Both the position numbers and the translations under genes were made by a program. 45,223 nucleotides of DNA from Bigelowiella natans CCMP2755 (Eukaryota; Protista; Cercozoa). A model generated the notes under the pieces. That model worked only from the letters and a program-made list of their open reading frames with translations. It was not told where the DNA came from and did no database searches. Shown in pieces: positions 1 through 23,889 of the stretch. Position 1 is the first letter of the stretch. Each line of letters opens with the position of its first letter. The stretch lies in assembly GCA_000320545.1 (NCBI GenBank), contig ADNK01000184.1, forward strand, positions 1-45,223. The letters run 5' to 3'.

Positions 1-835
1 CCTTGTTACCTGCAGACTTTGAACGCTCGTCGCATTGAAGCTCCGACCCAACTCTTTGGGTTTCCGAATGCCCCATCCCCGACAAAAGTGAGGAACACCC
101 TGGTAGGGGGGGAGGGAAGGGGGGGGAATGGGAGGATCAGCGAGTCATCGATTCGTAGGAAAAGGAGTCGTTGTGAGATGTGGTGGTGTGTGCTGAATCT
201 CAAACAATCACCTTCTGGATCCCCCGCACGTTGCAGCATTTGCAATGCCGGCTAGCAAAGTTGCCTGTGATGGAATCAATTCACATCACCACAACCAACA
301 TGCTCGCGTGAATGCTCACACACTTCTCGGGCAACTACACAGCACACACGACACACACACACACACACACACGCCATTGACACATCAACACATGCACACA
401 TGTGTGTGCACATGCATGTGTGCACATGTGTGTGTGTGTGTGTGTGTGTGCATGACCGCCCAGTAGCGTTTTTCCTTGTTCTTGAGCTCATTCGCAAGCG
501 CTGAGAGGTTGTCGATTTGCCCATCTCTGACTTGCCCCCTCTCCTTCCCCATCTACCGACCGGTGCAAGAAGAAAAGAAGAGGTACACGTGACGATGATG
601 TTGCTGTTTGTGTGCCATCATTTTCAAATCTCCCCCCCCTTTCCCTCATTCTCTCCCACCTCCCTTTTGTCGCCAGTGCCTTCACAAAATGGTTGCGGTA
701 GGCGGTAGCAGGCCCAGCAGCAATGGCGCATGCGGGACCTGTCAGAGAGCATGAAATCGATCAAGAAGAATTTTTGTCAAACATTTCTCCTGAAGAGGCA
801 ATTCTCGGCTAATCACAAAACTTCTAGATTCCAAG

Positions 836-870
<35 letters not shown>

Positions 871-1757
871 CTCACCTTGGGTCACATCGTGAGCGTAGCT
901 CGCAACCCCATCCTCAGGGGTCACTGAAGGATTCACAAACTCGAGGCAATCAAATTGGGAGGCGACCTAAATCACACCATTCGCTCCAACAAACAAACGG
1001 CAAACCACAGCAACTGCTGCGACCAAGACGACAAAGCATGGAGGACCAAAAAAACTGCAGCCCCCTGATTGTTTGAATCTCTCTCTCTCTCTCTCACCCG
1101 AGCCCCTTTGACCCTTTCACCCCCCACCCCCCAATGAATGTCCAACAGTGGCACCTGGAACATCCCGCCTTTGCAGATCGACTCGCTGTGCAAGTTCAGA
1201 ATGTCATTTGTTGCAACATGCCGCACTTTCAGGTTGGTTTTCTTTCCGTCTCCTTTGGTCAAAAGCAATGAACATGGAGATGCAGCGCTAGCATGGCAGG
1301 TTGAAGTAGCAATGGTGGATTTGTGGGGAAGTGTCATTGAGTTTCGACTTGAAAAGAGATCATCACTGTCGCCTTGCAAAAAATGCAGCGAGGTGTGAGA
1401 ACTGAAAGGCAAAAAAAACACGCAAACTGCAACAACCTTCCGCTTCAGTCCACTGCCGGACGCCTTGAAGCGCTTGCCCTTTTTCTTTCCACTCTTTTTT
1501 TGCCCTCGCATGGGAAGGTAGGCTTGGGGTCAGGGTTCAATTGGTGGGAGGTTGTTGGACGAGCTAGATTCTTGGTTTTGGCGCCGAAATCGGAATTTGG
1601 CGCGGAAACAGAAAGCGCGGCCGAGTTTTTTTTGGAGTCATGGTGCAGCAAAACGTGTGCACCACAAGTTGAATTCAATGATGTTGTTGACAACATCGGG
1701 GATTTTGCTTGCGTGCGACAACATGGCCTCTGTGACTCATGGTGACATGGCACCATG
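1..1757 (-). pseudogene. Hypermutated multi-exon gene of the uncharacterised VASQFNxLE...TPEDG...DxTQGPACA...GxGAFGN family (possibly macrodomain/PARG-like); runs off the left window edge
   Basis: Spliced minus-strand exons read ...LNLHSESICKGGMFQ|VASQFDCLEFVNPSVTPEDGVASYAHDVTQG|PACAIAAGPATAYRNHFVK|MGKERGQVRDGQIDNLSALANELKNKEKRYWA|ATLLAGIANAATCGGSR|VFLTFVGDGAFGNPKSWVGASMRRAFKVC. Family recognised from memory of these motifs. QFN->QFD (951) and RNYF->RNHF (689-691) are TpA-type lesions. The 5' end is uncertain. Confidence 0.75.
388..450. repeat. Mixed CA/TG alternating tract, probably a decayed (TA)n microsatellite
   Basis: Strict purine/pyrimidine alternation (ACACATGCACACATGTGTGTGCACATGCATGTG...) in which every YR step is CA or TG, never TA or CG. 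Confidence 0.6.
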
Positions 1758-1842
1758 AGTCATGTTGCAATTCACCGAATCGACAAATTGCCAAAGACAC
1801 ATGGTGTCGGAAAGCGTGCCCCCCGACCAGTCGACCGCAGCT

Positions 1843-2040
1843 TGTGATGCGTAGCAACAGCTGACTCAGTGCAGTCGCTGCAATGCTCAATTGCAGCAGT
1901 CGCTGCAATGCTCAGCTGCAGCAGAACAGGACATGTCGCAAGAAGGTTCGCAGAATGTTCCGCAGCGCGCTCATGGCATCGTCACATGCACAAGTCGCGA
2001 CATGCAATTGAAACACAGCTCAATCAACCATCGACCTGCA
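1843..2040 (+). repeat. 5' LTR (198 bp)
   Basis: TGTGATGC...GACCTGCA. Identical to 6919-7116 except at 3 nt. Contains an internal ~25-bp tandem duplication (1871-1920). Confidence 0.96.
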
Positions 2041-2042
2041 TC

Positions 2043-2056
2043 TGGCTTCCACAAAC
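2043..2056 (+). promoter_or_regulatory. Putative primer-binding site
   Basis: TGG-initiated sequence (TGGCTTCCACAAAC) 2 nt after the 5' LTR. The cognate tRNA is not identified and the site may be mutated. Confidence 0.45.
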
Positions 2057-2080
2057 AAGGGAAACTGACACCCATTCACC

Positions 2081-5000
2081 ATGGCACAACCATCACGCAA
2101 GGAACTGCGCTTGGCGATCACCAATGCCATTGATGCATTCGCGCAGGACCCGGACGACGTCAAAGCACGGGAGGAAATGCTCGTCGCGCTGCGAAATGGG
2201 AAAGCAACCAAGCTAGAACTCGCGCTGATTCGCGGTGCCCTGATCAAGGAGCACGACCAATTCACGTTTGACGCCGCGGCCGAAGAGGTAGCGACGCATT
2301 TGTCCACGATCAGGCCGCCCACCAGGATCATCACGGCATGGAGGGACTTGTTCCAGCCTGCGACGAACAGCAGGAACTCCGACGTTGGTGACGACGTGAA
2401 GGCGCCTGCAGTGGAGAACAAGTCAAGGATCATCAAACCCACGGTGGTGAGCAAGGTCACGTTGAACCTGCCCACTTGCGATGGATCTCGCGGAGAGGCA
2501 CGCCGATGGTGGACAGACACCAAGGACAAACTCGAAGAAGCACATCCAGACGCGAACGACGCAGCGAAAACCACCTGGTTGATGTTGACAAAGAAATCTT
2601 TGGAGAACACATGCAAGTCAGGAAGCGAGCGCGTCAATCAATTGAAAACAGAACATGAGATGCAAGGGGGCACCGATGTCTGCGCGCCAATGGAGGAGTT
2701 CGTCAGTGAAATGGATCTCAACTCTCTCCCTGCACTGCCAAATGAATGGCGAGCTGTCCGGCAAAAGGATTCCGAAACTGCAATTGACCACCGAACGAGG
2801 TGCGTGAATCCAGTCCGAGACCCAGGTTGTCAAGGATGCAAGGTCACTGAGGAACAGAAACTTGCGATGTTCAAAAATGCGTTGTTGGTCAAGGCACACA
2901 TGCAATCCCTCGATGACACAAAGACAGACACATTCGCGAAAGCAGCATCAGAAGCGAACAACAAGGAAACATCCAACGATCAAAATGAGACAAAAGGATC
3001 GCTCAACATGATGAACAGGCACGGTGCACCCGAAACAGCAATGCATTTCAAAACTGACGAAAAGAGATGCGGGTGGTGCAAGGGGAAGGATTGTTGCACA
3101 CCTAGGTGCCCCAGGAAAGCACGTGGCTTGCCCGAAACCACTCAGAAAAGACTCAAAGACATCGAGAAAAAGAGGAAAGATGGAAGAGACAAACAGAAAG
3201 GTGCTCACCCAAGATCAAGACGGGGACGTCTCCACAACGTCAAAGCCAACGAGGTGCTCGCGGGCCTGCTCAAGCACCTCCGCGGGGAAGGCTCTGCGAA
3301 TGCTGCTCCCCACAAAACAACAAACTCCGGGTTGACTCGAGATGAAATCGCCCAGCTTCAAAGCACTTTGGGATCGCAGAGCGATCAAGACCTGTCCTCA
3401 GAAGAAATCGCCCAAGTTGTTGGATGCAACAACGCCTCCGAACAGATCCGCGATCTTGAGATGCCGACGGCTTCCGAAGGCAATGAAGGCCTCAAGATCT
3501 CCATGGCGAGGGCAAAGATGAACAATCGCAAGGTCACCGCACTTTTGGATTCTGGTTCGATTCCCCTGAGTCACATTGCAACAAAGAAGGCACAAGAGCT
3601 CGGCCTTTCAGGAAAAGCAAATGTCCACAGGTCAGATCATGGGACGGCAAAGAAGGGCGGCGGTTTCTCCTCCATGGGCACCCTTGAGACCGACGTGAGC
3701 ATCCCCGGTGCGACCGTGCGCCTCCCAGCCAAGCTGTGTGTCACCGGGGACATGTCAACAAACTGCATCCTGGGGTCCGATTTCCTTCACGCACACCAGG
3801 CGATCATTTCGCACCATCACGGAAAGACGTTCTTCCCGCGCCACAAAACCGAGGGGAAGATGGCATGCCTGCCCATGCTACCTGTTGGAAAATGGAAAGA
3901 ATCAGCGAATGCATCGTCCACCGACTTCGAACGCAACCCACCTGCGCCCAAGGAACATCAGGAACGTCACCCGAACAAGAACCTGCGCCAAATCGCCGAT
4001 TTGCTCGAGCGCACGCCAGCTTCTGACGACTGGTCCATGGAGGAGGGTGGAAGGTGTGTTCAGGCATTGTCAAAACGGAAGTGCAAAAATGTCACAATGC
4101 CCAGAAAAGGACCTTCACCTGACATTGACCCAGTGCGCATGGAGCTCAAGGAGGGACACGAAAATGACATCGTGCACGTGCCCGAGCCATCGAGACCACA
4201 AGTGGACCATGAGAAGACACGGTGGCAGGTTCAGAAATGGACAAACGACGGCAAAGTCGAACCCTCAACGTCTGGACATGACAGCCCGCTCATCCTCGCA
4301 AAGAAAGAAACATTCCCGCACTTCAGACTGGCACACAATCTGCGTCGCGTGAACAAGATGTTGAAGAGACGCCACTTCCCGGTGAGAAAGATCGACGAGA
4401 TGCTGGACGAGCTGACCATGATGAAGATCTTCACGACTCTGGATGAAAACGAGGCGTGCACACAGATCCCAATCCACAAGCAGTCTCGTCCTCTCACAGG
4501 ATTCTCAACTAGAGACGGCAAGTGGCACTTTCGAGTGTTCCCGCATGGGTCATCGATGTCCGGAGACTGTTTCAGCGAAGCTAGCTTTCGCGCCTACTCC
4601 CACGACGGCGGAGCTCTGCCATTGTGGATCTTCGTTTGGGTCCACATTGATGACGACTGCATGGGAACCGTGACAGTCGCAGCACACGTGTTTGTGTTGG
4701 AGTGCGTGTTTCTGAGATTGCAGCTCTTCGGGTTCACAACACGTGCACCCAAATCTCTGTTTTTGCAAACAGAAATCCCATGGGTCGGTCACCTGGTGTC
4801 ACACGGAAAGATCGCACCAGATCCGGCCAAAGTCGAACAGGTGCGCCAAATGGGGAAGCCCAAGAGCATGGCCGACCTGCGTTCGTTCCTAGCCATGGCA
4901 GGATGGATCCTCAAACGATGTGCGACCACGCACGCACAAACTGCTGCTGCGTTCACCACCGCCTGCCGCAAGCCCAACGACAAAGAGCCTTTTGCCAAGG

Positions 5001-6889
5001 TGTGGGGTGAAGCAAATTTGGATGAACCTTGCGACAAATTGAAAGGCATGATCAGCTCGGAATCAATGAGGAACACGTTCAACGAAGACGCAAAATCCAC
5101 AATCCTCTGGACCGACTGGTCCAAACTCGGCACAGCTGCTGTGCTCACCCAGGATGGTGACATCGTCAACGTCTGGGGGAGGTCGTGCAGTCCCGCGGAG
5201 AGTGGACATTCTCCTGCTGAAGGCGAACTGCTCGCCAGCACCGAGGGACAACTTCGTTTCCGACGACATCTGCCATCCTGTCGTCATGGTTTTGACCTTT
5301 GTGTCGACCACAGGCCACTGTTGGGCATTTGCAAAAACCATGAGACGGCCAACGAGCAGTTCGCCAATGTGAGGTCAAAGACTGAAGAGTTTGACGACAC
5401 CAGGCGAATCAGGTGTGTGCCTGGTGACGAACAGCTCGCAGACACATGGTCGCGTCCATTCCAGCGCCCACCTGCTGACTTTGTGCCCGACAACCTGCAC
5501 AATCTCTTCGAGGATGACTCAGGTTTTGTGCCTGACACAAAAGAGTCGGCGGCATCAGTTGTCGAAGCCAAACTGAAGAAGTTGCGCATCCGACGCCTCG
5601 AAGATCGCGTTGAAGTGTTCACTGGTGGAGAATGGAGAACTCGTGTGCCCAAGCGTCAACGATTGAGACTCTTGTGCGAAGCTCATGGCAATGATCATGC
5701 CAGCGACACCAACATGGCAATGCGCCTTTCAAAGCATCACTGGTCAAAGAAACCACCAGATTCCCGACAATGCATCCAGGGCTGCAAGTGTGCTGCTCTC
5801 AAAGCTGCAGGAACACCCCGACATGAAAGCAAATCATCCAAGTCTTCTGGGCGGATCTGCGCCAAAGAACGTTTCGATGTCGTCCAGATTGACATGTGCA
5901 AGCATTCCGGTGTGTGGTGCATGACTTTTGTCGACGTAGCCACTGGAGAACCGTGGATTCGCCGAATTTGCAAAGTCGGGATGGCGAAGAGAAACAAAGG
6001 TTTCCACAAAGCTGAAGTCCACAACGAACACAGACACTGGGAATCAGAGAACGGAACTCCTGAGAAGTTGCACGTCGACAACGAGGTTGCTCCAATCACA
6101 TTGCCTCATCCCAATGTGCAACCAGGTCCTGTTGACAGACCACAAAGTGACGCCATGGTGGAACGTCTGCATCGCGTCATCGCTACATTGTGCAGAGTTC
6201 ACGGGACAACTCCAGACAGCATTCGTCACTTGTTGCCATTCTTCACTCGTCCATCTGGGGGCGCATCCAAGAAGAAGGACGATTCAAAGACTGCAGTCAA
6301 GTGCGATGGACGGATCACAAAGACTGGAACTCTGGTCAGAGCAAGAAAACCCACCAGAAGCAGAGAGAAGGAAGATCCGTTCTGGAACAAGGTGGCCAAA
6401 GTCACGGAACGAATCGGCAAAAGAGTTCATCGCGTCTGGGACGGTGAGAGAGCATCTGACAGGTTCATTGATCACCTCAAGAATCATTCCATTGGTGATG
6501 ATGTTTTGCGACATGCTGAGATGAACGACAAGACATGGGATGTTGCCCGAGACACCATTGGAGCAAAGCCGGACTTCGACACAAGCTGCGACAACACTGA
6601 CTGTGGATTCGACGACGACTGGAAGAACAAGACCGTGTTTGCTGGACATCCAGGCAGAAGCAACATGGAAAGGCTGCTGAAGAAACTGAAGAGAGGAGAT
6701 TGTCGTTCAGTCCACGCTGCTGTGCCAGGACTGCAATGTGAACGTTGGTTTTCACAGCTCGAGGACTTGTCAGACAGTTGGCATGCTGTTGAGGTCAAAG
6801 ACGAAGACAACTTCTGGCAAGATGTCCAAGGAAGAGACTTCAGGGACGAAGCCATCGACTGGTGTCTCATGAAGTTCACTGCTGCTTGA
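2081..6889 (+). pseudogene. Gag-Pol polyprotein ORF (1602 aa), open but with degraded conserved motifs
   Basis: Zn-knuckle-like CGWCKGKDCCTPRC (3068-3109); protease LLDSGS (Asp 3548); RT LDENEACTQIP, FPHG, HIDD (4643); RNase H WTDWS, HSPAEGELLA, DHRPL, ADTWSR; integrase H-H-C-C, IDM, HVDNE, PQSDAMVERLHR. Only one Tyr in the whole ORF. Confidence 0.9.
6497..6889 (+). other. C-terminal domain resembling a degenerate phage-Dam/DIRS-type N6-adenine methyltransferase
   Basis: Pattern TW...IGAKPDFDTS..N..GFDDDWKNKTVFAGHPG..NMERLLKKLK......AAVP.LQCERWFSQL parallels F..I...G.P.IDLFAS..N...DAF..DW.....Y.NPP...I...L.K.......LVVP.W....WF..L. Alignment by eye only. Confidence 0.55.
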
Positions 6890-6910
6890 GAGCGCTGCAT
6901 CTTCGCGACT

Positions 6911-6918
6911 GGGGGAGG
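6911..6918 (+). promoter_or_regulatory. Polypurine tract
   Basis: GGGGGAGG directly abutting the TG of the 3' LTR. Confidence 0.8.
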
Positions 6919-7116
6919 TGTGATGCGCAGCAATGGCTGACTCAGTGCAGTCGCTGCAATGCTCAATTGCAGCAGTCGCTGCAATGCTCAGCTGCAGCAG
7001 AACAGGACATGTCGCAAGAAGGTTCGCAGAATGTTCCGCAGCGCGCTCATGGCATCGTCACATGCACAAGTCGCGACATGCAATTGAAACACAGCTCAAT
7101 CAACCATCGACCTGCA
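6919..7116 (+). repeat. 3' LTR (198 bp)
   Basis: Direct repeat of 1843-2040, followed by the TSD AGCT. Confidence 0.96.
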
Positions 7117-7279
7117 AGCTGACCCACCCGGCAAAGTGACCCCAAAGCCAGGAAGGCTGGGTGGGTGCAAACTGAGTCACCGCACGGCACCCTGTTCGTG
7201 TTGGAGTGCTTCGCACAGCGCACCGCACCCAGGCCGCGTGTGCGCGGAGCACGTGTCAGCGTGGTTGCAGCAGCAGCGC

Positions 7280-7319
7280 AATGAACAATGAACAATGATG
7301 AAAAACCACGTCTCCAAAG
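7280..7319. repeat. Dispersed short repeat, copy 1: (AATGAAC)n-AATGATGA..AACCACGTYTCCAAAG
   Basis: Near-identical to 23469-23521. Confidence 0.7.
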
Positions 7320-7871
7320 CAAGAGCAACGATGTGCTGTGTGGACTCAAAGTCCGCACGCGTGCACGCGCAAGAAAACACACGCACGCACTTGAAAAGCA
7401 CACGTGCTCTGTTCACGTCCACACGTGGACCAAACAAACTGCGACACGCACACCAAACGTCAACAAGTGCAGCTGCAGTGCACGGGCACGTGCAAAGCAG
7501 TTGGTGCACACGTCGTGGACGGCACGCACGCACGTGGACTTGAAGTCCACACGGTGCTGGCGTTTGCTGGCTGCGACAAGCTGGCAAGCAACCAGCACGA
7601 AACGAGAGTGCATGTGTGCAGCCGAAGTGTTCCAGTGTTGCGTGTGCGACAATTTCGGCAGCACCAGAGCACCGCGAGAAGTTTTCTTTGTGCGACAAAG
7701 TGAGCATTCTGGCATTCTTCCTTGGTGTTTGTGCGCTGCACGTGCACAATTTTTGTTCAAGGTGTTTTCGCCTGATCAAAGTGAGAACGTTGACTTGACG
7801 TTGCACGCAGTGAGCCCGTCTCGCCTTCAAGCAGCCAACTGCCCTCCATCGCCCTGCCCAGCTGGAGCCGT

Positions 7872-9689
7872 TCACCTGCATCGCGAACCGCCCACCCCGC
7901 AACTTCCAACAGTTCGCTTTGCCTGACTTGTCACAACGTTTTCAACGCACAGGGCTTTGACCAGCCTTTGGACCAAAAAGCACTTGAGTCCTTTTGAGGA
8001 AAGGTGCTGTTCGCGCAGGTTCAGCAACATCGCCTCCCTGTCCATTGCCAAAACCACTTTCAACACGTCCTCCACCTTCTTTTTCGAACGACGCACCGAC
8101 TTCTTGCTCAGAAGATCACCGGACGTGTTGCTTTTCAAAGTTTCCTCAGCACCGCACGCCTCCTGAGACAAAACATTGCAATTGACACAAGTTTTGGAAA
8201 CAAAGACGTTGGGTTTTCCACTGACTTGAAACTTCGCATCTGCTGGGATGCCAATGACTGCTTTCTCTTTGACTTCGCTCAGTGGTGTCACTGCAAACAT
8301 CAAAAGGTGAAACGTTTGCGAAACACAGAATGAACTTGATGTCCCTGCAAAAAACACGAATTGAATGTGCACTGCACGCTGCCAAGATTCGCAAACACAC
8401 ACCAACACACGAAGTGTCAGTCTCACAGTTTTAGCCGCCGGCGCATCTCCTGACGAAATTGGAACGCACCTACTGTCTGAGGAACGGGTGTCTCATTTGA
8501 TTGAGAACTTGGAGGTTCTGTCACCTGAACTCTCTGCTGTGCTCTCTCTTGCAGCACTCGCGGCACCTTTTGAAGATGTACGCCTTTGTGGACTGCGAGA
8601 AACCTGTGCAATGAGGGAAAATGTGAAAAGTGAAACACCTTTCGTCTCCTCGATGATAAAAGCAATTTCACATTATGAGGTCCTTCGGCTCCGGGATGTC
8701 TTTTTCATTGATTGTCTGAGTGGGGGGAAAAAATCTTTATTTTGAAAACATCCAAAAATAAAATTAAAACCTTTCTCCGAAGTTCGTCATAAAGCGCAAA
8801 CTTAAATTTGGACTCGAAGTTGCTACGGTGTTGAGTATCAAGCTCTTTCATATCTCGATTCGAGCGAACGATAGAGGAACGCAATGGACCATTATTTCTA
8901 CCTCCTTTACGCTCGATTCGGTCTCTGCTTTGGCTCCCAGTTGGACCAGAGCGCTTGGTTGAGAAGGAGTTCCGGTAACTGCTCTGCTGGTTCCTGTTGT
9001 CTCTGCTTTGGCCACTTTCAGTATGGCTAGAGTGCCGGATAGAAGGGTTTTCCGAATAACTCTTGAACTTCCTCTTACGCCGATGACTTGCTTTGCGCGC
9101 TATTTTCCCGGATCCATCAGACATATTTCTACGTTTTGACATATGTCTGCAGTTGTTCGAAATTTCTCGTGGCTCATTATCCTCAAGATCTTGAGGAGCA
9201 GGAGGATATTTATCTTTGGGAGGTGCATTGTCTCTGGTATCTCTATTTCTGAATCCCGACTTCTCGATTTGCATTCGGTGGGATATATAACCTGTCGGAA
9301 ACATTCCCTTCTTTCCAGTACGCATATTAATACCCTTGATATGAGGTCGGAAGATAAATCTATTGTCAGACAAGAAGATACATTTGTAAAGTGTAAGTTC
9401 TCACCCAAGTCCACCCATCAGAGTACTTCTCCAATATTTTCACTGCGTCACTGCAAAATTATTGGATCTGAATCTTCACTCCTTTCACAACTCACAACGA
9501 ACCGAGTAAGAAAATAAAAGTGGTGATATATACACACCCTTCACGTAGAGGTATCTCGTCTTTCTTTTTCGGTATATATTTGTGCGCTGCCCAGCCCAGC
9601 GAAGGTGACTTTTGTTCGCTGGTGCTGCGGGCGATCCCCGTTTGCGTTCTGGACTTTTTTCTTGATCTGGGTGGAAGATGGTCACGCAT
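7872..9689 (-). CDS. Multi-exon protein with N-terminal SH3 and C-terminal SAP-like domain
   Basis: Spliced SH3: GWAAHKYIPKKKDEIPLREG|DAVKILEKYSDGWTW|GINMRTGKKGMFPTGYI. Basic low-complexity middle. SAP-like MDREAMLLNLREQHLSSKGLKCFLVQRLVKAL (~7955-8050). The last exons lie inside the TpA-free zone and the 3' end is uncertain. Confidence 0.7.
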
Positions 9690-9816
9690 TATCCGGGGCT
9701 CATTTGGATATTAGTTCGAGATTAGTTGATGAAGAAGATCTCTTACAATCTCTCACTGATCACCAACTACGCTATTCGTTCGATTATCGTACATCTTAAT
9801 TCTACGACATGGTTCA

Positions 9817-10678
9817 ATGGAGAAAAAAAATATAAATTGGCAACTTGGTGAAGAATCGCGTCACGACACAAACAGTTTCTGGACGAGTTGGCCAATGGCG
9901 GTAGGAAGGGTAGGGGGGGGCAGAGGAATGTGTGCCATCTAAATCCAAATTTGATATGCTAAATGATAAAGAATACGTGCTACAACGAGTAAATACAAGA
10001 ATCGGAAGATATTAATCTATTCTGAGAATAGAAGCTTTGTAGATAACTCTCGATATTATGGCTGTTCCTATCTTCAGGAGTCGGCAATCCAGTGGGTGTC
10101 GGACAATTTCGATTGGTTGTACGAGAAATGGTACTGCAGTTGCTGTGATAAGCTCAACGTCACAGGTATGAATGTTTTACCGCAAATAAGAAAGCTGAAA
10201 GACTTATTTTCATGGTCTCACGAACCTGTCCGAATTTGTAATTTGCAACACCGAACAAAAATTTCAATTACCATGAAAGGTTGCTGTTGTCCAAGCGAGA
10301 AGAATAGTGATAAATGGAATTATTGGACTTCGAAATGGGTATGTTGTATCAGTGGGATATAGAGGCTCCTTCGCTTCTAATTACGATTTGCCAGGTGCTA
10401 TGGCTGTACAACAAGATACCTGTGCCGGAAGAAGAGAAGAAAGTGGATAAATCACAGTTCTTCAACAATCATAAGTACAAAAATTGTGACCGAACAGCCG
10501 CCATATCACGCACATTGTCTTCACAGTCACGTGTTTGTTGTATCAGATTCGAGTTCCGCACCCGTGAAAAGCCAGAAAACCACAAGTGGTGTATCTGTTG
10601 TTGCTGGTGTCGCTACATATGTCAATTCAGGTTGCTGGATCCTCATACCACCCTACATCTAGTTAGAAATCCACTGAA

Positions 10679-10730
<52 letters not shown>

Positions 10731-12136
10731 CCAGGTGCGTGATGAAGAGGAGCTGTGGTTACACAATCTACAGCTGCGTTTCAGAGCCTTTAACAAAGTT
10801 CGGCATTTGCAGCATGTGTCTTCCCTGTTTTAGGGTACAACCCATTAGGAAGGTAATTTGCATCCCTTAGCATGTCAATAATGGATGTTGTCACACACAC
10901 AAGCACACTCCTATACTTTCTTTTCGAAGGTTCTTTTAGCTGGACTAAAGGGAAGTGGGAAAACGTTTCTGTTCCGTAAGCTCTTGACAAGAGCTGGTTC
11001 AGAGATTGTCGCACCTGATACAGGTGTTACTGGTGTTACTGTAAATAGAAGATATCGCCTCTCCTCCCGCTTATACACTTGTGCTGTGGAATCAATTTAC
11101 CTGGTGTTTCTTAACCTACAAAAGGCCCTTCAACAAGGGGGTTGGTCGACACTGTCGTCACGTTCAATTTGTGGCAAAAATATGAGGTAAGTTTTGGGCA
11201 AAATGTGTTTCTTGCGCCAGCAGGCGGAAAGATACACGAACTCGAAGCTATAGAACACTACTGTCTGTCCCCAATTTGAGTGACGAAGTTGTTGACTGAC
11301 TTAGGTATTTGACATCGGTGGTGATGACACCCAGCGTCAATTTTGGAGAACTTATTACAGCCTCATGGTATAAGACAAAATCATGATACTTGTATTAAAA
11401 GATAATACGAATAACAATTTGGTGTATCATCATCGGTAGGTGAAATTCGACACGGTTGTCTACTGCATCGACGCAACGCAGTATTTACGGACAAACTTCG
11501 CCGATGAAATCGTGAATAAGGAGAGGCAGGTGGTTCATCATCATCATCCTTGTCTCCTAATTTGTACTGAGAAGAGCTTTTGTACACATTTCTTCAGGAG
11601 ATTCATAAGATACTTGCTTCACCAGAGCTCAGGCCAGCACAGGTCAATCATTCGTATGATTCAATGAAAACGTGTAGTTACAGGCTGATGATATGGGGTT
11701 TTGTGATGCCTTGTAATTGTTAGATTATATGCTACCTGGTCTTTCGAGATGCTGGTTCAAACTTAAGCTGGAAAGAGAAAGAACGTAATCATATTGATTT
11801 AACCTGTCCTAATATTGCACTCAGTAGCTGCAAGAAAATATATTTGAAGGTGCATAATATGTAATATAGGCAAGGGCCGCGAAATCTTATCGACATTAGA
11901 GGTCCGTGTTCGCGAGAATCAAGACCAGAGCAGAACAAAGTTCCCGCAACAACGAGTATTCCATTCTTCTTAGAATCAAGTTGAAAAGGTTGCTGAAATA
12001 TTGAAACATTAAACAGGTTTTTTTCGTGGCCGATTACAAAGAGCTTCTGCATAAACTTAAAATCGACTCGGATATTCACGGGAATGGACTTCTCGAAGAC
12101 AATGATGAGGACGATGATGGTGAAAATTACGTGTAA
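9817..12136 (+). CDS. ARF/ARL-family small GTPase with Cys-rich N-terminal extension
   Basis: Exons encode VLLAGLKGSGKT (P-loop, ~10930), VFDIGGDDTQRQFWRTYY (~11305), VVYCIDAT, EIHKILASPEL. Start and end approximate. Confidence 0.75.
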
Positions 12137-12849
12137 TGCAGAGCAAACCTGAACACTATAAGAGAAGCACTCTGAAATCCAGTGTGTATTTTAGTGTATG
12201 TATTCCTGATTGTATGTTGCCATTGTGAGCAGCTGCGCGCCCAGCGGCTGTATAAGCACTTATCGCGCGAATGATCGCGGAGCGCACAACTAAGCTTTTT
12301 GTGCGGCCGAAACGAATGTGCGCAAGCTCATGCAACGACGGCGTCAATGCGATGACAGTCGAAAATGAAAACTCTTCTGCAAAGCGCACCGCCGTATATG
12401 CCCCCGCGGTGCGCGCTACCGTATGTGTACGATAGTACGTACAGCGTGCGGCATGGGTGTGCACACAAGCGTGATGCTATGTGCATGTCATTATATCATT
12501 GCAGCGCCTCATGCTACGCTAGCATGTTGCCTGCTTGCAGCTTGCGCACATCACATATAGCATCCGCATCGATCACGGCCAGCATGCAATGCGCTGTGCA
12601 CAACCTGCATGCACGCGAACTGCTTAATTACATGCCTGCCCAACGTCTTGTAGTTTATGCAGAAATTTCATTGCGTGCAGATCATTATTAGGCCTACTAG
12701 CTACTATGCCTGCTGGGATACAATCTAGCAATGCGCGCGAGGTGACCCCCGTGCTCAGCTAATAAGCTTCAAATGACTGTAAGAATCTGCCATATTCCTA
12801 ATAATTGCTATCGCACAGTACATGCAGCCTTGCACGGATCCAGCTAAGA

Positions 12850-21544: not shown

Positions 21545-22882
21545 ATGTCGCCCGAGCCCGCCAGCCGAAGCAGCATTTCCTCCAATGCGACTGCTACAAT
21601 CGACATTGCACAGTTGATTCGTGAGCGCGACGAAGCGCTCAATCGTGAGCGTTTGGCTCTTGAAAAGGTCTGGCTTCTCGTGAAAGATTAAGTAGTACAG
21701 ACATAGCGTTCATTTGAGTCTATTGAACATCTTCAGGTGGAACAAGCGACCAAAGTCGTAGCAGATTTTGCAAAATCTCAAGCCACACAAAAGAGGGCCT
21801 ATCAAACACAATGTAAACTATCTTCTTGAAAATCCACAACACTAACACTGACTATGCGATGTGGGAATACAATTTCAGATGACGAGGATCGAAGAGAAAG
21901 GTTCAGACACAGAATACATGCTAAGATGATTAAATGACCTCATCATAATATACACAGAGGAAGAAGGAAGGAATCAGGCGCAACAGGCAGTATTAGAACG
22001 GTATTGAGGTCTGCTGCAAATGGAGACGCTGACTATGTCTTGCAGAACCAGCATGGTGACCACTCCAACGCTGAGAATCACATACCGACGAAAGATGGGG
22101 TAAACGTCACAACGAGTGGCTCATCCATAAGCGATATCAATCAGGAGAAAGAGGATAAGTGGGATGATACGCTTCGACGACGCTCTCCAAGGTAGTGGTA
22201 ACTTTTAATCGCATATGCGTTGGGCCCTCACTTTTGATTCGTCTTGGCTAGAGGTAACCAGGAGGCGAACAAAAATGACAGCGACGAAGACATTACTGAC
22301 GAGAACGTATCAAATGATCCAAATGATAGCTTTGATGATGATGATAGTGACTCTAGTCTACACATGCCCGACGACCATCCTGACAACTGCAAGCCCCGTA
22401 CAGACCCACTGGTGAGAGCAGAGAGTATAAGGTAGTAACGATGATCCATTTACGGCTAAATGTTGCTACATCAATTCAACACGCTGTTTCTTATCAGGGA
22501 TGCCATGTCGATGACATTAGATCAATACATCGAAAAACGAAGGTTACTACCCTGTTACAAATGTTCGATGAGAAAAGTGGGGAGGCATTGCATCTGATGA
22601 TTGTTCAAATACATGTGGATTAATTGTCCATCATTTATACGTACAGGCGGAGAGGAGATCCGTACTATGCTTACGAGCCACGTTAGAAGTTGCGTTCATT
22701 TTGTCACACTAGAACTAGCTGCAGAGAAAGGGACGCATGATTTGTGCGCTGAATGTTCACATCACGTTGTTTGGACGGTCAGTATCACAGTAGACACATA
22801 CGAACTTCACGGTGCAGCATCCGCATCCATGCAACAAACAATGAGCCCTCCCCAGCAGATCATTGCAAACGGTGTCATCTAG
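21545..22882 (+). CDS. Hypothetical protein (coiled-coil then acidic region)
   Basis: MSPEPASRSS...LIRERDEALNRERLALEK|VEQATKVVADFAKSQ... with GT-AG introns and an acidic exon NDSDEDITDEN. The 3' end grades into the TpA-depleted island. Confidence 0.5.
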
Positions 22883-23695
22883 ATGTGCGCATGCAGTGAG
22901 TGCACGAACGCAATTCATCAAGCAGCACGTTTGGCGCACTTCATTGGGATGGCATGATCATTGGCATCGTCACACATTGTGTGCACAGGATGTCGTGTGT
23001 CACACGTGTCTAGGCGTCAGCCTGTGATGAACACATTGACATGCGCAGTCCACAATGCCAGAATGTGGTGGCGTGGCTAGCCATGTGGAGACGTGTGGCC
23101 TTCTGAAGACATCTTTGCATTGTTGTGTCTCCATGGCAGCGCACACGTGCTTGATCAATTGACTCAATCAACCTCAATGCAAGCTAGCAAGTGATCTGGT
23201 TTTGCATTTCACATGCTGTCTGCATCATGCGCATCGCACGTTTCGTGTCAATGTGATGCACGTCCAGGTCTCATTCGTGCGCACACATGGCTGCTGACTG
23301 GTGTGTCCGTGCACGTCCTCATTTTGGGTGCTTGTTCGGGTGAATGTCACGAGAACAAGGAGTGTCTCTCAGGGTCCTCTTGACGAAACCTAGGCGACAT
23401 GCATCATTCCTGCGTGTGTAGCCGTCTTCACCATCATCATCACAATCATCATCATCATCATCATCATCATGAACAATGAACAATGAACAATGAACAATGA
23501 TGATGAACCACGTTTCCAAAGTGTTGCAAGACACTTGCAGTGTGCGAAACGCAGTGCCTCGAACTGGCTTCAGTGAGGACTACAACTAGTGAACTAGCAG
23601 GTTTTTGAATTGGCACAGTCAGGCCATTGTGAAACAACGTGGGCAGCAGCAATGTGGCGACGACGCAAGGCATCCACTCTGAGCAAGAACTTCCT
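22805..23695. other. Second TpA-depleted island
   Basis: All TA sites seen in ~900 bp are CTAG, GTAG or CTAC (e.g. ~22879, 23010, 23077, 23184, 23390, 23418). CA/TG are in strong excess and the flanks have normal TA. Confidence 0.88.
23469..23521. repeat. Dispersed short repeat, copy 2
   Basis: (AATGAAC)n AATGATGATGAACCACGTTTCCAAAG, matching 7280-7319. Confidence 0.7.
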
Positions 23696-23889
23696 GATAT
23701 CTTTGAATGGTACGACATAGAACAATGTGGGCAAAATCGTGTGCATTCATCAAGGACGACTTGCACGATGTTGGTACGACAAGGGACAATATGGGCGAAA
23801 TCGGGTGCATTTCTCAAGGGCGACTTACATGATGTTGCTTCAAAACTCACGCTCCTAAACATAGACGGACGACGCGCGCGCGACGAATG

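Follow-up and report, generated by a model that had tools for sequence, protein, structure and literature searches.

A tyrosine-poor LTR retrotransposon in TA-depleted DNA

The window analyzed here is the whole of contig ADNK01000184.1 from the alga Bigelowiella natans CCMP2755 (GenBank assembly GCA_000320545.1; 45,223 nucleotides, forward strand). Its subject is a complete long terminal repeat (LTR) retrotransposon at 1843-7116, which surrounds an open reading frame (ORF; 2081-6889, + strand) of 1602 amino acids (aa) closed by a TGA stop. The original prediction had singled out this frame as a polyprotein with one tyrosine, and both the length of the ORF and its sole Tyr (codon 839) were confirmed; His and Cys make up 4.2% and 2.7% of its residues, respectively. 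Depletion of the dinucleotide 5′-TA-3′ (TpA) is severe, with an observed/expected ratio of 0.04 in the ORF and 0.07 over positions 1-8000, compared to 0.78 in the rest of the window (8000 to the end). In the TA-poor DNA, CpA (1.31) and TpG (1.56) are in excess over expectation and CpG is normal.

The coordinates of all features are collected in Table 1. As in Ty3/gypsy elements, direct LTRs with TG...CA ends flank the coding region and a target-site duplication borders the whole; the YxDD motif of reverse transcriptase (RT) is lacking in the window copy, which reads HIDD. The two LTRs are 98% identical and differ only at two former TpA (TA vs CA at LTR positions 10-11, CA vs TG at positions 16-17). 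Pfam searches gave the domain order protease, RVT_1, RT_RNaseH, with protease and RVT_1 below their cut-offs in the window copy; RVT_1 scored 23.0 bits there vs 34.5 in an intact relative. No match to rve was obtained with the element proteins, and the zinc-binding part of the integrase gave a weak Integrase_H2C2 match in the intact relative alone.

Table 1. Features of the element and its surroundings, in window coordinates.
Feature	Position	Strand	Basis or remark
TA-poor block, TpA observed/expected 0.00-0.25 per kb, CpA + TpG excess	1-8431		Dinucleotide counts
TA-poor repeat, unlike the LTR element	344-1814		Copies 89-92% identical on C180, C600 and C1350
Target-site duplication AGCT, left	1839-1842	+
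5′ LTR, 198 bp, TG...CA ends	1843-2040	+
ORF: gag, protease, RT, RNase H, integrase, C-terminal domain	2081-6889	+	Sequence, Pfam
Cys-rich knuckle at end of gag (CGWC...C)	3068-3109	+	Read from translation
Codon 355, CAG (TGG in the other two copies), probably an erased TAG	3143-3145	+	Three-copy comparison
Aspartyl protease, LLDSGS at 3542-3559	3509-3790	+	Pfam gag-asp_proteas, 21.7 bits, below cut-off
Reverse transcriptase	4319-4792	+	Pfam RVT_1, 23.0 bits, below 29.6 cut-off
Sole Tyr codon TAC, context CTAC	4595-4597	+	CAC in sister copy, TGC in third
HIDD replacing the RT motif YxDD	4643-4654	+	Codon CAC/CAC/TGC across copies; relatives YVDD
RNase H	5030-5374	+	Pfam RT_RNaseH, 32.8 bits
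Integrase region; Asp motifs at 5879-5896 and 6071-6085	5735-6085	+	Motifs read by eye
C-terminal domain conserved in the retroelement clade	6488-6886	+	GYPG...VPDL...WY...WW; here FAGHPG, Tyr to His
Purine run directly 5′ of the 3′ LTR, resembling a polypurine tract	6911-6918	+	Read from sequence
3′ LTR, 198 bp	6919-7116	+
Target-site duplication AGCT, right	7117-7120	+
TA-free flank	7121-8431		Short repeat matches only, about 7279-7540

The conserved C-terminal domain was modelled from intact relatives (alignment A1) with a predicted local distance difference test score (pLDDT) of 86, as a Rossmann-like alpha/beta fold. Its best structural matches were adenine-N6 methyltransferases (PCIF1, Z 7.2; KsgA/Erm; Dam-type, Z about 5), none above the usual noise; a DPPY-type motif was not seen in this domain and Pfam returned no match for it.

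Three copies of the element and the fate of their TpA

Localised TpA to TpG/CpA hypermutation of integrated foreign DNA in B. natans was described by Mettrop et al. (bioRxiv 10.64898/2026.01.13.699255; hereafter the preprint), so that the process is already known and the window locus is a clean example of it, not a new system. Evidence at this locus comes from two further copies of the element. A sister copy (C1192:32389-37660) is full-length, 95.2% identical to the window copy and set in its own duplication (ACGT), with a 2-bp deletion, and homology between the two stops exactly at the LTR ends. The third copy consists of four non-overlapping pieces (C3142:4952-5961, C236:73898-75245, C3143:22574-23081 and C3143:13386-15299). 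Apart from the survivors described below, the copies are TA-free, and each lies within a larger TA-poor zone with sharp edges. As the third copy is scattered and every piece of it sits in a TA-poor zone, the erased zones look like graveyards of broken elements.

Sites were tallied one by one across the copies, the three-copy alignment spanning window positions 1843-7116. The window and sister copies differ at 252 positions, 199 of them at former TpA: 186 make up 93 pairs in which CA in one copy faces TG in the other at the same dinucleotide, and 13 more set TA against CA or TG. Change ran from TA to CA or TG. Judged from the alignment, the CA/TG pairs are explained only by an ancestral TA altered separately in each copy; CpG decay was ruled out as their source, since 280 CpG are intact in all three copies and only 38 are partly decayed. 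When all three copies were compared, the odd one out was spread 57 / 42 / 38 (∼137 sites), close to the equal thirds of fully independent erasure, no TA was common to all copies, and one site read TG/CA/CG. Both strands were hit alike: the window copy has 73 CA and 64 TG outcomes, and the total for all three copies is about 208:203 (CA:TG), upholding the claim in the original prediction that TAY codons had gone to both CAY and TGY. We estimate that the copies, at their separation, had about 197 TpA in 4815 bp (4.1% of dinucleotides). Since this equals the mean TpA of B. natans coding sequences (CDS) given in the preprint, the source element was normal. The differences within the LTR pair, the balance of CA and TG and the independence of the copies together place the changes in chromosomal DNA, on both strands and at a time after each insertion; RNA was not their site. 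The 38 variable CpG sites read CG in some copies and TG or CA in others (seven with CG in the sister copy only); possible sources are decay of methylated CpG and rare T>C changes at TpG of the kind seen in three entries of the preprint list.

This copy of an LTR retrotransposon was therefore very probably erased in place, after integration, by the TpA-specific hypermutation of the alga. The ORF is complete and its catalytic Asp residues are kept, as would be expected of an intact, active HIDD element that natively avoids TpA (e.g., by selection against UpA in RNA), and TpA is somewhat low in the nearest metagenomic relative as well (observed/expected 0.48). However, we give native avoidance almost no credence: at about 137 three-way sites, the YxDD codon included, a dinucleotide that is CA in one copy is TG in another, the LTRs of one element differ at former TpA, noncoding flanks are erased, and relatives carry YVDD with 2.3-4.5% Tyr. 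These relatives also remove the circumstance that would have spoken against the original prediction, namely, that active relatives natively have HIDD and low Tyr content. The closest ones outside the genome are two metagenomic polyproteins (41-46% identity, YVDDD, 2.3-2.9% Tyr). With YVDD in relatives and a Cys codon at this site in the third copy, the loss of YxDD in the window copy is secondary.

RNA editing is a very improbable source of the pattern. Under such a scheme, an ADAR- or ADAT-like enzyme would convert UA to UG and reverse transcription would fix the change at each transposition. Known RNA-acting adenosine deaminases do favour U 5′ of the edited A. Editing of sense RNA, however, gives TA to TG alone, yet CA equals TG here; the two LTRs, which start out identical, have diverged at former TpA; erasure extends to DNA beyond the LTRs; and in the preprint changes arose in single-copy DNA during vegetative growth.

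Of the 72 alignment columns in which the intact family has Tyr, the window copy fills 20 with His, 14 with Cys and 1 with Tyr, and 41 codons differ as TAY/CAY/TGY among the three copies. Seven sites had been proposed as positions where Ty3/gypsy proteins normally carry Tyr or another aromatic residue (codons are given in the order window/sister/third copy, against the aligned residue of the intact family). Four proved to be former TAY codons, all with Tyr in the family: EACTQI at 4457 (TGC/TGC/CAC), HIDD at 4643 (CAC/CAC/TGC), HSPAE at 5207 (CAT/TGT/CAT) and CVPG at 5414 (TGT/CAT/TGT). At 2477 (PTCDG), all three copies read TGC and the family has Tyr, making a former Tyr likely. A former Tyr at 2789 (IDHRTR) is unproven, with CAC in all three copies and Phe in the family. 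The proposal does not hold for LHVDNE at 6071, already marked as the weaker case: all copies read CAC, the family has His, and this is a native His with no lost Tyr.

A former TA could be proven at 163 sites, where the window copy shows 90 missense and 50 silent changes, no nonsense change, 10 TA still in place and 13 sites outside the ORF. The largest missense classes are Y>H (25) and Y>C (15), followed by L>P and I>M (8 each), K>E (7), T>A and V>A (6 each) and I>T (5). Counting hidden concordant sites too, replacements probably total close to 135. From the burden of at least 90 missense changes, the window polyprotein is presumed to be nonfunctional. The argument from the genetic code that TA to CA/TG can make no stop from a sense codon was borne out by enumeration (196,420 changes in stop-free codon triplets, 0 new stops). 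Under these changes, TAA goes to CAA or TGA and TAG to CAG or TGG. The block holds <5 TAA + TAG per kb vs 49 per kb elsewhere (both strands), with TGA unchanged at about 40. Codon 355, just past the gag knuckle, reads CAG in the window copy and TGG in both others, and was quite probably once a TAG separating gag from pol, lost since by erasure in each of the three copies. Deriving it from CGG would take three separate CpG hits on a single site, and well under one such site is expected; on the other side, the relatives have no stop there. An ancestral TAG would mean that the ORF was lengthened as well as kept open, and the long ORF may be a fusion.

The claim that a dead element of this kind would be annotated as intact or active held in part: the locus is modelled as a gene, JGI model Bigna1 67480, but the public model is a spliced gene of 1243 aa with zero Tyr, not an intact element. 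It equals the window ORF with predicted introns at 4238-4837 and 5000-5455, which cut out the RT core. At the sister locus (C1192:31004-41490; L031, L034), the model Bigna1 80248 (2722 aa, one Tyr) spans the sister copy, both LTRs and several kb of TA-free flank, and is an annotation artefact of stop-poor DNA. Both models are in the supplementary lists of TpA-poor CDS of the preprint. There are no RNA sequencing runs on record that share words with window positions 1-6000, and 19 DNA sequencing runs contain 0.64-0.74 of the words of this segment.

Extent of the block, surviving TA and candidate chemistry

The process was spatially bounded. The right edge of the TA-poor block is sharp, with zero TA in 6185-8432, normal TA density from 8432 and a median TA-to-TA gap of 9 bases past 9000; the left edge lies beyond the window start. 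For the delimitation of regions, the preprint required at least three consecutive 1-kb windows with Rho_TpA of ≤0.43 together with Rho_CpA+TpG of ≥1.52. At this locus, Rho_TpA was 0.00-0.25 in each of the first nine 1-kb windows, and Rho_CpA+TpG was ≥1.52 in four of the first eight and 1.24-1.49 in the others. The element begins ∼25 bp past the end of the repeat at 344-1814; this upstream flank is thus a repeat, not a single-copy host gene, and is less fully erased (TpA observed/expected about 0.06-0.25). For the downstream flank (7121-8431), no long second copy was found in the genome, and its ORFs have no Pfam domain. Neither SH3 nor SAP nor any other clear domain came up in Pfam searches of the ORFs of both flanks and of 8004-12461. 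At 22881-23581 lies a separate small TA-free island (TA-free runs of 131, 206 and 162 bases), the right end of which, at about 23465-23700, is a ∼230-bp repeat present hundreds of times in the genome.

Survival of TA depended on the flanking bases. In the block 29 TA are left, all but one within CTA or TAG, and retained TA counted as copy-sites were 9/26 in CTAG, 8/77 in CTAC/GTAG, 1/59 in CTAA and 0/252 elsewhere (p = 8 × 10^-11). A half-site model fitted in this analysis gives relative rates of about 0.2 for C, about 0.5 for G and 1 for A/T. The dose was also finite, as CTAG still survives. The surviving TA are retained ancestral dinucleotides, not new ones. An origin of surviving TAG by C to T change at CAG was rejected: at sites where a TA survives, agreement and disagreement between the other two copies are equally frequent (6:6), and ∼9:1 agreement would be expected. 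The suggestion that the sole Tyr sits in a protected context was right as to its context, CTAC being among those that survive, but this codon did not escape in the sister copy (CAC) or in the third (TGC). By hand count, CTA/TAG account for 20 of 206 changes in the mutation list of the preprint, 0.54 of a rough background (p = 0.0014). In the giant-virus region of Table S2 of the preprint, A>G in TAG is found 3 times and T>C in CTA 17 times, though these are the same site on opposite strands.

We propose the following course of events. The whole 8.4-kb neighbourhood was exposed, after integration, to TpA-specific hypermutation that turned the A:T pairs of 5′-TA-3′ into G:C on either strand, yielding TG or CA, and about 95% of the roughly 200 TpA of the element were converted. 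All TAY codons but one became CAY (His) or TGY (Cys), with Ile, Leu, Val, Lys, Thr and Asn codons changed as well. TAA and TAG are destroyed or turned into TGA by such changes, which left the frame open and probably added the gag-pol join, and the protein gained at least 90 replacements, one of them in the RT active-site motif. The agent may be a DNA adenine deaminase aimed at the locus or at a chromatin state, as hypothesized in the preprint.

Three points weigh against this account. First, the sites that are half protected gave even outcomes (CA:TG 80:76), whereas a simple neighbour preference of a single-strand deaminase predicts otherwise. Second, the flank at 7121-8431 is TA-free without a long second copy, which would fit either a process spreading from the element or an element landing in an older erased zone. 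Third, TA is palindromic, so sequence cannot separate adenine from thymine chemistry. A strand-specific effect of a 3′ G was considered and is unsupported by the 80:76 outcomes; the evenness would fit recognition of a duplex site better than a single-strand neighbour rule.

Adenine deamination remains the leading hypothesis. The genome contains one A_deamin gene (C2414) and six CDA-fold loci (C980, C3623, C3286, C3588, C570 and C1679), the latter without any additional domain in their ORFs; those on C980 and C3623 are two small TadA-like paralogues. The preprint named an ADAT2 homologue as candidate, besides an ADAT3 homologue, and also put forward the U preference of RNA deaminases. In-place hypermutation could instead act on thymine, for instance, through a modified T at TpA that mispairs with G or is mis-repaired (T to C). 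At a self-complementary TA, T to C and A to G are indistinguishable, and even CA:TG outcomes that do not depend on the flank, as expected of duplex-site recognition, suit either chemistry equally well. Thymine modification occurs preferentially at TpA in dinoflagellate DNA, which we take as a lead only. No Tet_JBP domain was matched in the genome, in a weak search that gave no match anywhere, while deaminase-fold genes are present and the preprint names a candidate; thymine chemistry is therefore an unlikely, though not negligible, alternative to adenine deamination.

Untouched relatives, known systems and consequences

A related LTR family in the same genome comprises >100 near-identical copies (e.g., C2101:19399-20592; L003-L030) with a 1657-aa ORF, YVDD, 4.5% Tyr and a TpA observed/expected ratio of 1.14. 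Its copies differ by a median of 6 differences in 4194 bp with an ordinary mutation spectrum, and the family looks young and untouched by hypermutation. From the counts of the preprint (211 mutations, 6169 TpA, 3132 generations) we estimate about 1.1 × 10^-5 changes per TpA per generation, at which a targeted copy would lose 95% of its TpA in roughly 3 × 10^5 generations. The ordinary divergence of the young family (∼0.07% per lineage) corresponds to about 2 × 10^6 generations, which suggests that copy number alone is no trigger. This bears on a homology-triggered defence like repeat-induced point mutation (RIP) of fungi. Three subfamily copies and the neighbouring repeat are all erased, as such a defence would have it. 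Against it stand the normal TpA and ordinary spectrum of the >100-copy family, the single-copy viral insert that is the main target in the preprint, and the erased flank at 7121-8431 with no long second copy; we consider a RIP-like trigger improbable. RIP does resemble the present process in being region-wide, in-place transition hypermutation of mobile DNA that has sharp edges and kills elements. However, RIP changes C:G to T:A (mostly CpA to TpA), enriches TpA, makes many stops and needs duplication, whereas here the direction is reversed, no stops arise and the >100-copy family is spared.

Other known systems share single aspects of this behaviour. APOBEC3 enzymes likewise inactivate retroelements by deaminase-type editing in a dinucleotide context, but they act on one strand, the minus-strand cDNA, during reverse transcription and often create stops (TGG to TAG or TGA), whereas the B. 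natans locus was altered after integration, on both strands, into the flanks and without stops. ADAR hyper-editing and editing of the ADAT2/3 type yield I, which is read as G, from A and favour U/T immediately 5′ of that A, in RNA substrates; here, DNA was altered. The system of the preprint is the one that agrees, in the same species, with A:T to G:C changes at TpA only, on both strands, in place on chromosomal DNA and in sharply bounded regions. There, mutation is ongoing in viral inserts that still keep many TpA, whereas at the window locus an LTR retrotransposon has reached an end state. Over 15 mutation-accumulation lines (strain RCC623), 231 of 302 new mutations in the preprint fell in giant-virus and virophage inserts, arising in some lines only; 230 of the 231 were A>G or T>C and were described as all at TpA, with four T>C changes whose context is ATG or ATT in the accompanying table. 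A genome scan in the same work found TpA-poor CDS and 124 TA-poor clusters, enriched in RT and DDE domains, and a DNA adenine deaminase was proposed. A search of its text found no mention of stop codons, tyrosine, LTR elements or flanking context beyond TpA. What the present analysis adds are the survivors of CTAG/GTAG type, the untouched >100-copy family and weak signs of the process in Lotharella and in a Tara Oceans contig.

Outside B. natans, transcripts of RT fragments from Lotharella globosa (P0029, P0167) carry CVDD, and 11 conserved Tyr columns read His in 4, Cys in 2 and Tyr in 4. These weak signs may indicate the same process in another chlorarachniophyte genus; no contig is on record for the Lotharella protein. 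In a Tara Oceans scaffold (L051:1-1200) that encodes a related fragment of RNase H, TpA observed/expected is 0.1-0.28 and 16 of 17 TA are in CTA/TAG; no DNA match to this scaffold was found in the B. natans genome. A further metagenome contig (L052) is of ambiguous composition.

Hypermutation that makes no stops and raises G+C is an unusual process. Since erased DNA loses TAA and TAG, dead elements and their flanks stay open in many frames and enter gene catalogues. This consequence is not spelled out in the preprint and is illustrated here by a 1243-aa Tyr-free model and a 2722-aa read-through model; near-zero Tyr together with an excess of His and Cys is a simple flag for such gene models. 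Three independently erased copies also form a natural dose-response of flanking-base preference, which any candidate enzyme should reproduce. A bolder possibility, which we consider doubtful, is that the mutator reads double-stranded NTAN half-sites (C worst, G next), is aimed at loci or chromatin states and not at repeats, and acts in Lotharella globosa and an uncultured marine relative as well, with the adenine-methyltransferase-like C-terminal fold of the element even serving as a counter-measure. If true, this would constitute a lineage-wide genome defence with rules that are absent from the preprint.

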